Below, piece after piece: positions 33,181-35,329 of a stretch of DNA of 64,000 nt (position 1 is its first letter; each line of letters opens with the position of its first letter). The position numbers were made by a program, and so were the translations under genes. The stretch lies in the NCBI GenBank assembly GCA_016748015.1, contig JAAOMT010000369.1, positions 1-64,000 on the forward strand. Direction: 5' to 3'. The DNA comes from Geosiphon pyriformis uo1 (taxonomy: Eukaryota; Fungi; Glomeromycota). Below the pieces are notes generated by a model that was not told the DNA's origin, did no database searches, and saw only the letters and a list, made by a program, of their open reading frames with translations.

Positions 33181-33787
33181 TAATAATTTAAAATAATATT
33201 ATTTAAGTTTTAATAATAATATTTTTTAATAACAAATTTTAATTAATAAACAATTTTATGTTAATTAATAAATTATATTATATTTATTTTATTTTAAAAA
33301 ACCATTTTTATAGCATTTAGTAATAATTTATATTAATTTTTTTAATAATTAATAAAGCTATAATTTTATAAATATTAATAATTAAAAATTTGAATTGATA
33401 AAATTAAAAATTAATTTTATAAATTAATTTAAATATTTTATGAAATTTTCAATTAAATTTGTTTTTTTACATTAATTATTTTTATCTTGTGGGTTTTGTT
33501 TATTTAAAAAAATTATTAAAAAGAATTGTGTTTTATAATTAAAATATCATTTTTTAAAATTAAAATTACTTGTTTATATAGATGTTGAAATAATACAAAG
33601 TTATTTAATTTTTAAATTGGTAAAATAAAAAATAAAAAATAAAAAATAAAAAGCGATTTTTCGTTTGTATAACGTGATTTTCTCTATTAGGTTGTGAAAA
33701 TCACCTGACATTGGAAATTGCTTTAAAAATGACGAATCACCCATCAACCTATAGGAAAATTTTCTTTTATTAATACAATTTCGTGAA

Positions 33788-34717
33788 ATGAATTGTTCAG
33801 TTGCAAAAGGAAACGAATTTGAAAAAGAAATCTTAAAAATCTTTAGAAAAATGAACGTTGAATTAAATAGAACGAGGTGATTTTTTTCACAGAGTTATTT
33901 GTTGAGTTGTTGTGTGTCTGAAGTTACGCTGCCACTAGAAGTAAATCAGAGAATTGAAAGCTCTTCGTGGCCACAGCTTGCGAAAGTTACCAGTCAGGTA
34001 TTCCAGACCTGATTTACGGTGAACGGCCTGCTGTGAACGTTCTTCTCTGTTTTCGAAAAGCTGACTGACATATGTATCGGAGCCTGTGGTGAATAGGATA
34101 CACGAATTATTATCGACTGACACATGTATCGGGATAATAATTCTTGACAACTATGATACAAATATACTCACCATTTTTTATTCATTTTTTTTAGACATGA
34201 ACCAGGTGACGGTGGAGTAGATTTGTTTGGTGGTTTCTTGGGATATACTATTGTAATTCAGTGCAAAGTAAATGTTTCATTTCATTAAATCAAATCAAAT
34301 CAAATCAAATCAAATCAAATCATTCAAATTTTATAATATTAATAATGTTTATAATTATGATTATTATAGAATCATATTAGAAAAATTGGACCGCAAACAT
34401 TACGTGAATTAGAGGGTGTTTTAACTAGATTTAATAAAAATACAACAATTGGTATTCTAGTAACTCCTTCTGTGGGAAGTTTTACTGGGAATATAATAAA
34501 TAGAGCTAAATCGTCTGAATATAAGGTTATCCTAACTGATCAGATAAGTATTTATTCAGATTTAATTCAATTTATTAATTCTCAAAAAATCAGAAGTTAT
34601 AAAAATATACATTTTATTTTTTTTCATTTTTATTTCATTATTCTAATATTGTGTACATTATTTATGTTATTTCGAAATAAATATAATGACTTTGACGATG
34701 ATGTCTACATTTATTAA
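33788..34717 (+). CDS. Mrr-like (Mrr_cat/RRG7-related) PD-(D/E)XK nuclease with C-terminal hydrophobic helix, 169 aa; exons 33788-33876, 34195-34267, 34370-34717
   Basis: Spliced translation KGNEFEKEI...PGDGGVDLFG...IVIQCKNHIRKIGPQTLRELEGVL...IGILVT. GT-AG introns keep the frame. Tail IHFIFFHFYFIILILCTLFMLF. Confidence 0.85.
33905..34152 (+). ncRNA. Candidate structured RNA element inside intron 1 of the Mrr-like gene (family not recognised)
   Basis: GC/CpG-rich relative to all other introns. Terminal pair AGTTGT/ACAACT; stems GTAAATCAG/CTGATTTAC, AGCTT-GCGA-AAGTT, CCTGT/ATAGG, GAATTATTATC/GATAATAATTC; 18-nt direct repeat. Confidence 0.55.
34287..34321. repeat. (AAATC)7 microsatellite in intron 2
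   Basis: Perfect pentamer tandem. Confidence 0.95.
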
Positions 34718-35329
34718 ATAAATTTATTCCATTTTATTTCTTAATTATTTTTATTCATCTCGAGAATTATTTTTTCATTTGTAGTAAATTTTTTGGAAAT
34801 TGAAATTTCTATGAAATCGAGATCCTAATCAGAGAAGCTAAGATGGCTAAACATAATAATACCCTAAATTCCTCTTAATTGTCAATTGCGGCTAGATTTA
34901 ATACATAAGCAGACCCCATTTCGATCATCACGGATTTTATAAGGAAATATGTATCAGAAGCAGAAAAATAATTCCCGAGTTTGGATAATCATATTTCCCA
35001 CATCACGGTGTGGCATAGTCTTTTTTCTCAAAGTTTCCGGCAAATACCAGGCCATATATTAAGTAACTTCTAAGAGAACCGTTGACCCAGAATTCCATGA
35101 TGCGATCATAATTACCTAATTTCTAATGGATGAAGAATTCAATTCTTTTGACCATTACAAAACATATTAATTAATCCTTTTATCCGCTTTGCTTAAATTA
35201 AACGAAGAATAACAAAATCTCAAAAATTACCTTCTATATTAAATATAATTTTTTTTAAGATACCAATCTTAATATTAAAAATATTAAAAACTTTTTTAAA
35301 ATTAATAATAACAATAATGTAATTTTGCT

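Follow-up and report, generated by a model that had tools for sequence, protein, structure and literature searches.

A predicted conserved RNA fold spanning the first intron of a nuclease-like gene in Geosiphon pyriformis

The first 64,000 nt of contig JAAOMT010000369.1 (assembly GCA_016748015.1) from the glomeromycotan fungus Geosiphon pyriformis, hereafter the window, carry on the plus strand a gene of three exons (33788-33876, 34195-34267 and 34370-34717) for a nuclease-like protein. Comparison with homologous introns shows that nearly all of its first intron (GT..AG, 33877-34194, plus strand) is taken up by one conserved sense-strand RNA fold of ~290 nt, with the 5′ splice site at one end and the branch site at the other. 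Both of these splice signals are paired in the fold, and a role in splicing in cis is therefore our first choice for its function. A first-pass annotation, made by a model that saw only the letters of the window and their open reading frames, had proposed a new intron-resident RNA at this position. Our analysis agrees in that the element is conserved, structured and previously undescribed.

The fold and its covariation support

The limits of intron 1 and its roughly threefold excess in length had been recognized correctly: it measures 318 nt, compared with 102 nt for intron 2. The GC-rich core seen earlier is also real, at 45-49% GC, whereas the exons have 22-33% and the intergenic DNA around them 3-18%. 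A donor of the form GTGAKT or GTAAGT, a CTNAY element and a YAG acceptor are kept across 26 introns. In the window, the fungal consensus CTNAY and the distance to the AG point to a branch-site-like TACTCAC (34165-71, plus strand) with a candidate branch A at 34170, after which the sequence reads through a pyrimidine-rich tract to the 3′ splice site AG (34172-34194). These consensus signals, together with the placement of successive parts of the Mrr_cat domain in exons 1 and 2, mark intron 1 as spliceosomal in type, as far as sequence can tell.

The core folds more stably than shuffled sequences on the plus strand (z -2.7, compared with -2.1 on the minus strand), as does the intron as a whole (z -2.84), for which none of 100 shuffles was as stable. 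No Rfam 15 family was matched at the gathering score in any part of the window; at E<=10 over 33600-34500 there were only four noise matches (E 3-4.6), in agreement with the initial impression that motifs of known RNA classes are lacking. A likeness to U6/U6atac, 7SL and U4 was dropped, having no Rfam backing, and a literature search found no description of the element. The idea of a poison exon between two mini-introns was rejected because the upstream mini-intron would measure only 28-30 nt.

An 18-mer of the conserved junction strand termed block A, used to scan metagenome contigs, returned 47 loci, of which BLAST confirmed ~38 as homologues, all of them introns on soil and rhizosphere contigs. 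An earlier metagenome pattern of two blocks and a gap had given no matches; viral contigs gave chance 15-mer matches only, and none of L092-L125 had a BLAST match to the core. When the host-gene exons were queried singly by tblastn, almost every locus had the element placed between an exon-1-like and an exon-2-like piece of the same gene. Identity in the homologues is 25-50% for exon 3 and 75-100% for the RNA blocks. Whether homologous elements would lie in unrelated genes or only in nuclease genes had been posed as a question at the outset; the element proves to be confined to one nuclease gene family, and some tie to the host gene must therefore be real. The contigs of L055, L073 and L061 carry two nuclease-like family members in tandem, and each gene has a structured intron of its own. 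The introns of L049, L057, L067, L077, L085 and L088 have internal module duplications.

Twenty of the introns were aligned (alignment A2) and used to score a structure that a covariation scan and inspection of the sequences had yielded; the pairing and covariation figures for the individual helices below refer to this alignment. Of its 1186 cells, 87.9% can pair, compared with 37-55% when the partners are slid. Two-sided changes occur in 24 pairs (74 cells), compared with 8-15 pairs (17-32 cells) in the slid controls, and in four of five measures the observed value was unmatched by any of 500 shuffles. G.U pairs make up ~13% of the cells, which assigns the fold to the sense strand; on the minus strand these pairs would turn into A.C, and the minus-strand fold is weaker, so that an RNA transcribed from that strand was rejected. 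Run blind, RNAalifold finds helices P2 and P3 and adds P3b, and the minimum free energy structure of the window intron alone includes P-alpha, P0, P1, P2 and H3. Among the predicted elements, P0, P1, P2, P3, H1, H3 and a loop-loop kissing contact are supported by covariation.

Starting on its outer side, the fold has P-alpha, P0 and a kink-turn (k-turn)-like loop, after which P1 closes a three-way junction of the P2 domain and hairpin H3. The P2 domain itself consists of P3, domain H1, variable segment V2 and invariant junction strands. The complementary segments listed in the first-pass annotation were all found where it had placed them, and those that take part in the conserved fold differ from those that do not as follows.

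P1 pairs GTTGTTG (33906-33912) with TGACAAC (34145-34151) and is 95.4% paired, with two of seven pairs covarying. Its strands take in the AGTTGT and ACAACT once proposed as the bounds of an RNA module (33905 and 34152); they do form a helix, but the fold reaches beyond them and takes in both the 5′ splice site and the branch site. P2 joins TGTGTCT (33913-33919) to GGATACA (34096-34102), is paired in all cells with covariation in four of seven pairs, and clashes with a formerly suggested CCTGT/ATAGG hairpin. In P3, CAGAGAA (33947-53) pairs with TTCTCTG (34043-49) in 96.4% of cells and again four of seven pairs covary; an AGAG/CTCT hairpin clashes with it and was discarded. The short P3b (GAA, 33956-58; TTC, 34040-42) shares the conserved block GTGAACGTTCTTCTCTG with the 3′ strand of P3, and its middle pair is GC in 10 introns, GU in six and AU in four.

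Domain H1 (33972-34035) is closed by CACAGC (33972-77) and GCTGTG (34030-35), 84% paired, with covariation in two of five pairs and a change of the closing pair from C-G to U-A in four loci. It carries a lineage-specific insertion, absent from short-type introns, that holds a hairpin CAGGT/ACCTG (33995-99/34007-11) and the kissing sequence CAGTCAG (33991-97). This hairpin accounts better for the sequence than the GTC-A-GG/CC-A-GAC pairing first drawn there, and it becomes CAAGT/ACTTG in L055 and L068. The 3′ strand of the long helix originally assigned to 33928-49/34009-27 falls within the same insertion, and in L083 three mismatches in the GTAAATCAG/CTGATTTAC part of this helix are left uncompensated; the homologues thus do not support it. 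The GCGA-capped hairpin is restricted to window-type introns and overlaps the closing helix of H1.

Hairpin H3 (34104-34143), noted earlier as a perfect 11-bp stem (34104-14/34133-43), is 77% paired, with five of 10 pairs covarying. Its loop contains GACTGAC, through which it kisses the H1 loop. This contact, to which the CAGTCAG/CTGACTG of the first-pass annotation corresponds, is 86% paired and covaries in four of seven pairs: most introns have AGUCGAG/CUCGACU, L080 has AGUCGGA/UCCGACU, and the window has CAGUCAG with CUGACUG or CUGAC. The CTGACTG of V2 (34061-34081) is likewise complementary to 33991-97, and in short-type introns V2 is a variable hairpin. Window-type introns (the window, L083, L055, L061 and C710/L128) show a 17-20-nt direct repeat, copy 1 of which lies in V2 (34061-34081) and copy 2 in the H3 loop (34115-34138). 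The repeat copies are alike within each locus and different between loci, and the 6-7 nt that pair with H1 account for only part of this.

The junction strands of the P2 domain are invariant: block A, GUGAACGUYCUUCUCUG and UGUGGUGAAUAGGAU. Block A (GAAGTTACGCTGCCACTAG.., 33920-33941) is the same or nearly the same in all copies, although its invariance in the metagenome loci follows from its use as the search key. Block D (CTGTGGTGAATAGG, within 34084-34102) contains GTGGTGAA, which does not vary among 20 introns chosen on other grounds, and the rest of the block is nearly invariant. A candidate helix P4 (33930-35/34086-91) is plausible from the sequences; it too is invariant, partly through the search key, and neither P4 nor the alternative register given by RNAalifold shows any variation. 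The pairing GCCACAG/CTGTGGT, listed earlier as a potential long-range contact, is possible and would compete with H1 and P4.

Splice signals and a k-turn-like loop within the fold

The 5′ splice site itself lies in P-alpha (33877-33890), a hairpin in which GTGA (33877-80) pairs with TCAC (33887-90). Across 26 introns the donor GURAG pairs with a YUYAC 8-20 nt downstream in 96.8% of cells, compared with 36-65% when slid. The pair types change together: GUG faces CAC 21 times, and all three GUA donors face UAC or UAU. Directly after P-alpha, a conserved CUAAGUAAUUG-type sequence pairs with the region bearing TACTTAC or TACTCAC to form P0. In the window, its 5′ strand GAGTTATTTGT (33892-33902) is complementary to the branch-site region, and its 3′ strand (34158-69) overlaps TACTCAC. 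The duplex occurs in the same register in 21 of 22 introns, with a mean z of -3.4 relative to shuffles. In A2 it is 77% paired, with window-type rows off by one column, and three of 12 pairs covary; TAAGTAATT/AATTACTTA and TAAATATTTG/CAAATATTTA are examples.

The YUYAC strand of P-alpha is U1-like, and the 5′ strand of P0 is U2-like. The anti-donor sequence UUCACUA is also complementary to UGGUGAA in block D, which would allow a pairing that is a mutually exclusive alternative to P-alpha.

P0 is separated from P1 by an asymmetric loop whose 3′ strand, NAUGAUA, is near-invariant (A300, U301 and G302 in 19/20 introns each, A303 in 20/20) and whose 5′ strand reads UU(G/U)A. In the window, the putative box-D′-like UUGA includes T, G and A at 33903-33905, and the putative box-C′-like AUGAU lies in the opposite strand at 34152-34157 (a TAT bulge followed by G, A and T). 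The loop of window-type introns fits the standard kink-turn sequence, in the window with the bulge TAT and the pairs G34155.A33905 and A34156.G33904, the second of which would be A.U in 16 of 20 introns. We infer that the P0-P1 loop may be a k-turn.

The order of the boxes is of interest for the nature of the RNA. The 5′ strand has a D-like UUGA or UUUA and the 3′ strand a C-like AUGAUA, and the canonical stem P1 is internal. This arrangement is not that of a terminal box C/D motif, and the reversed order (a C′/D′-type orientation) rules out a canonical box C/D small nucleolar RNA (snoRNA). Like intronic box C/D snoRNAs, the element resides in an intron, has a closing helix and contains UGAU and UGA elements in a k-turn-like motif. 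It differs from them in its reversed box order, in having three times their usual size and no terminal C/D motif, and in its decay together with the host gene.

Genomic copies and a possible role in splicing

Searches by BLAST, by pattern and with a covariance model built on the 5′ leader revealed few copies of the element in the 128-Mb genome: C714, C560, C594, C673, C656, C544, C710, a tandem unit in C788 and a fragment in C595. We count 6-8 loci, all of them paralogues of one gene save the truncated fragment. In the first seven, an exon-1-like piece of a paralogue of the same gene precedes the element, or an exon-2- or exon-3-like piece follows it. Most of the paralogues have disruptive stops or missing exons, and their elements are partly deleted or AT-drifted; since elements decay in pseudogenised paralogues, the RNA is evidently not retained once the gene is lost. 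The C656 pseudogene copy (L153, 1122349-1122650), for instance, has a stop in exon 1 and an AT-drifted element with GGTGAATGTTTTTTTC replacing GTGAACGTTCTTCTC, and thereby illustrates the course of decay once selection is gone.

Two of the copies are unusual. C595 (L004, 339205-339310) retains only the 5′ half (leader, block A, P3 and a short H1), which is joined to unrelated, GC-richer sequence with a weak uridine-kinase-like match; it is probably a rearranged relic. C788 (L137, ~331900-332700, minus strand) has a 393-nt unit in tandem repetition; every copy contains a diverged intron element between GT and AG, and the sequence on either side of this element is exon-like and rich in proline and asparagine, not nuclease-like.

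The distribution of copies bears on further ideas about the element. The initial suggestion of a mobile intron within an intron is at odds with the small number of copies and the constant intron position in the paralogues, the lone copy elsewhere being a truncated fragment. A transposon, miniature inverted-repeat transposable element or introner is likewise ruled out by few copies and a single gene family. That the element is a functionless relic, be it of a transposon in decay or of coding sequence, or a structure due to chance, is scarcely credible. A single-sequence z of only about -2.7 and the fragmentary state of several genomic copies would suit such a relic, but the copies are few and occupy one intron position in one gene family, and covariation is strong. 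Stops in every frame and indels of 1-2 nt between copies, not multiples of three, rule out a coding relic in particular. In addition, GC content is held far above that of the surroundings, and it is the pseudogene copies that drift to AT.

The combination of paired U1 and U2 targets, a catalytic domain split by the intron, an immediate stop codon and an element that decays with its gene leads us to propose that the intron-1 fold is a cis-acting splicing gate, to which we assign a probability of about 0.5. The occurrence of homologous intron RNA in a rhizosphere metatranscriptome speaks for it as well. Intron 1 divides the nuclease fold near position 30 of the Mrr_cat profile, and a stop codon follows exon 1 immediately when the donor is read through (AG|GTGA). 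With the fold closed, U1 and U2 would be kept from their sites, the intron would be retained, translation would stop right after exon 1 and no nuclease would be made. With the fold opened or remodelled, the intron would be removed and the split nuclease domain could be produced. Such control would presumably reside in the pairing of P-alpha and P0 together with a trigger for opening; with its invariant junction strands, kissing contact and k-turn-like loop, the core looks suited to sensing or to protein binding.

Several observations weigh against a splicing gate. P-alpha of the window has just 4 bp and P0 is AU-rich, such that both are easily opened. The same geometry could aid splicing rather than block it, and the invariant core exceeds the needs of a simple mask, which suggests further activity (sensing, protein binding or catalysis). 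The high depth of the element in a metatranscriptome (see below) would also fit a stable excised RNA. Finally, no splice joints were seen in four sequencing runs, which come from other organisms whose diverged exons are not covered.

An aid to splicing is the subject of a model in which ~260 nt are looped out and P-alpha stacks on P0, bringing the first intron nucleotide beside the branch A and promoting removal of a long intron, as in a "zipper". Pairing of donor-proximal with branch-proximal sequences is known to aid splicing in long yeast introns. The 3′ strand of P-alpha does continue into the 5′ strand of P0, making stacking possible with the branch A at the junction. In this element, however, pairing involves the splice signals themselves and would be an obstacle to U1 and U2 binding, and a single helix would suffice for a zipper, with no call for invariant junction strands or a kissing contact. 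We regard this model as on the whole unlikely. The zipper stems of yeast (e.g. RPS17B/RP51B) resemble the element in the long-range pairing of the post-donor region with the pre-branch region; they differ in that the splice signals of the element lie in helices and a large conserved core is enclosed.

The invariant core also raises the question of catalysis, namely self-cleavage or self-branching of the intron. Its junction strands, invariant and unpaired, its kissing contact and its compact arrangement of several helices recall the architecture of a ribozyme, and in the stacked model the branch A would lie beside the 5′ splice site. Nevertheless, no Rfam ribozyme or group I/II intron is matched, the ordinary spliceosomal signals (GURAGU, CTNAY, pyrimidine tract and YAG) are kept, and there is no conserved bulged branch A. 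Catalysis by the core is thus very improbable.

A different fate for the RNA is suggested by public sequence data. In runs from other organisms and in a rhizosphere metatranscriptome the core is present and the exons are not; contigs from three sources, 211-224 nt long, contain nothing but the core, and the metatranscriptome holds homologous intron RNA, with variant contigs at a word depth of 33-128. Such abundance, the core-only contigs, the k-turn-like loop with its conserved AUGAU and the strict co-inheritance with the nuclease gene would all suit a stable intron-derived ribonucleoprotein RNA, whose compact fold with its k-turn would survive exonucleases and act in trans as a partner or guide of the nuclease or in a snoRNA-like manner. 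We consider this unlikely. The ends of the core-only contigs fall within H3, not at domain borders, and are therefore read as effects of coverage or AT bias rather than RNA ends. Moreover, the D-like box is 5′ and the C-like box 3′, unlike a terminal box C/D motif, and the variable segments are paired internally rather than free like guides. The 5′ splice site within the fold makes sense only in a precursor, and the element decays along with the gene.

If the fold acts as a splicing gate, its core might further be a sensor, either an aptamer for a small molecule or a site for the gene's own nuclease, whose occupancy would release the donor and the branch site; we put this forward tentatively, as a possibility well short of probable. 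Traits that might fit a riboswitch are the invariant junction blocks, the masking of both donor and branch site, and possible alternative pairings in stretches that show no variation. A natural comparison is the fungal intron riboswitch for thiamine pyrophosphate (TPP; e.g. Neurospora NMT1), which is also a folded RNA in a spliceosomal intron that pairs with splice signals and controls splicing by structure. Unlike that riboswitch, the element has no match to the Rfam TPP model, is ~3 times larger, pairs both donor and branch site, and resides in a nuclease-like rather than a metabolic gene. In yeast RPL30, which has a k-turn at the 5′ splice site, and in RPS14B, structure at or near the donor blocks spliceosome assembly, and the RPL30 switch is a k-turn bound by an L7Ae-family protein. 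The k-turn-like loop of our element lies instead between P0 and P1, and the fold spans the entire intron.

The element is a new RNA family that would work on a known principle, structure-controlled splicing, with unusual size and complexity. To our knowledge, very few natural cases of such control exist, and eukaryotic nuclear genes seldom hold large conserved RNA folds with tertiary contacts. Here, a covariation-backed fold of ~290 nt that pairs both splice signals is kept across a fast-evolving nuclease-like family of Glomeromycota-type fungi. Opening of the fold, control of a potentially toxic nuclease by intron retention, and binding of a ligand, a k-turn protein or the nuclease can all be tested directly. 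A small-molecule sensor, if true, would be only the second riboswitch class known in eukaryotes, and a nuclease-binding site would represent an RNA partner of a PD-(D/E)XK nuclease encoded within the nuclease's own gene. For annotation, the consequence is that gene callers read through the intron or miss it.

The host protein and neighboring sequence

Sequence profiles indicate that the host protein is nuclease-like, of the Mrr_cat/RRG7 type with a PD-(D/E)XK fold. Exon 1 (33788-33876, plus strand), recognized by its open reading frame and GT donor and by exon-1-like peptides 5′ of the element in homologous loci, would encode the N-terminal helix (..GNEFEKEI..) of this domain. Exon 2 (34195-34267) carries GDGGVD and IQCK (..GDGGVDL..IQCK), the catalytic motifs of the fold, and in homologues the Mrr_cat match lies above the cut-off. 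In the continuous exon 2+3 frame of homologue L058, Mrr_cat (PF04471) scores 32.8 bits against a cut-off of 21 and RRG7 28.3 against 22; in that of L091, Mrr_cat scores 25.9 bits against 21. Exon 3 of the window (34370-34717) by itself matches Pfam RRG7 (PF10356) with 23.9 bits, the cut-off being 22.

Protein searches were less informative: exon 3 of the window had no matches, exons 2+3 of L058 matched only metagenome gene calls in ENA that read through the 3′ end of the intron, and a protein atlas search returned bacterial Mrr_cat clusters only. The C-terminus of the host proteins has a coiled-coil-like stretch and a strongly hydrophobic segment (34600-34717 in the window, 1130-1217 in L091 and 1150-1236 in L058). 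This hydrophobic tail, which in the window is encoded by exon 3, suggests that they may be tail-anchored membrane proteins.

Two features of the surrounding DNA may be added. Intron 2 contains an (AAATC)n pentanucleotide microsatellite (34287-34323). Just 3′ of the host gene, an island of 32-41% GC (34800-35150) stands amid DNA of 3-15% GC and could be another small gene or an untranslated region.

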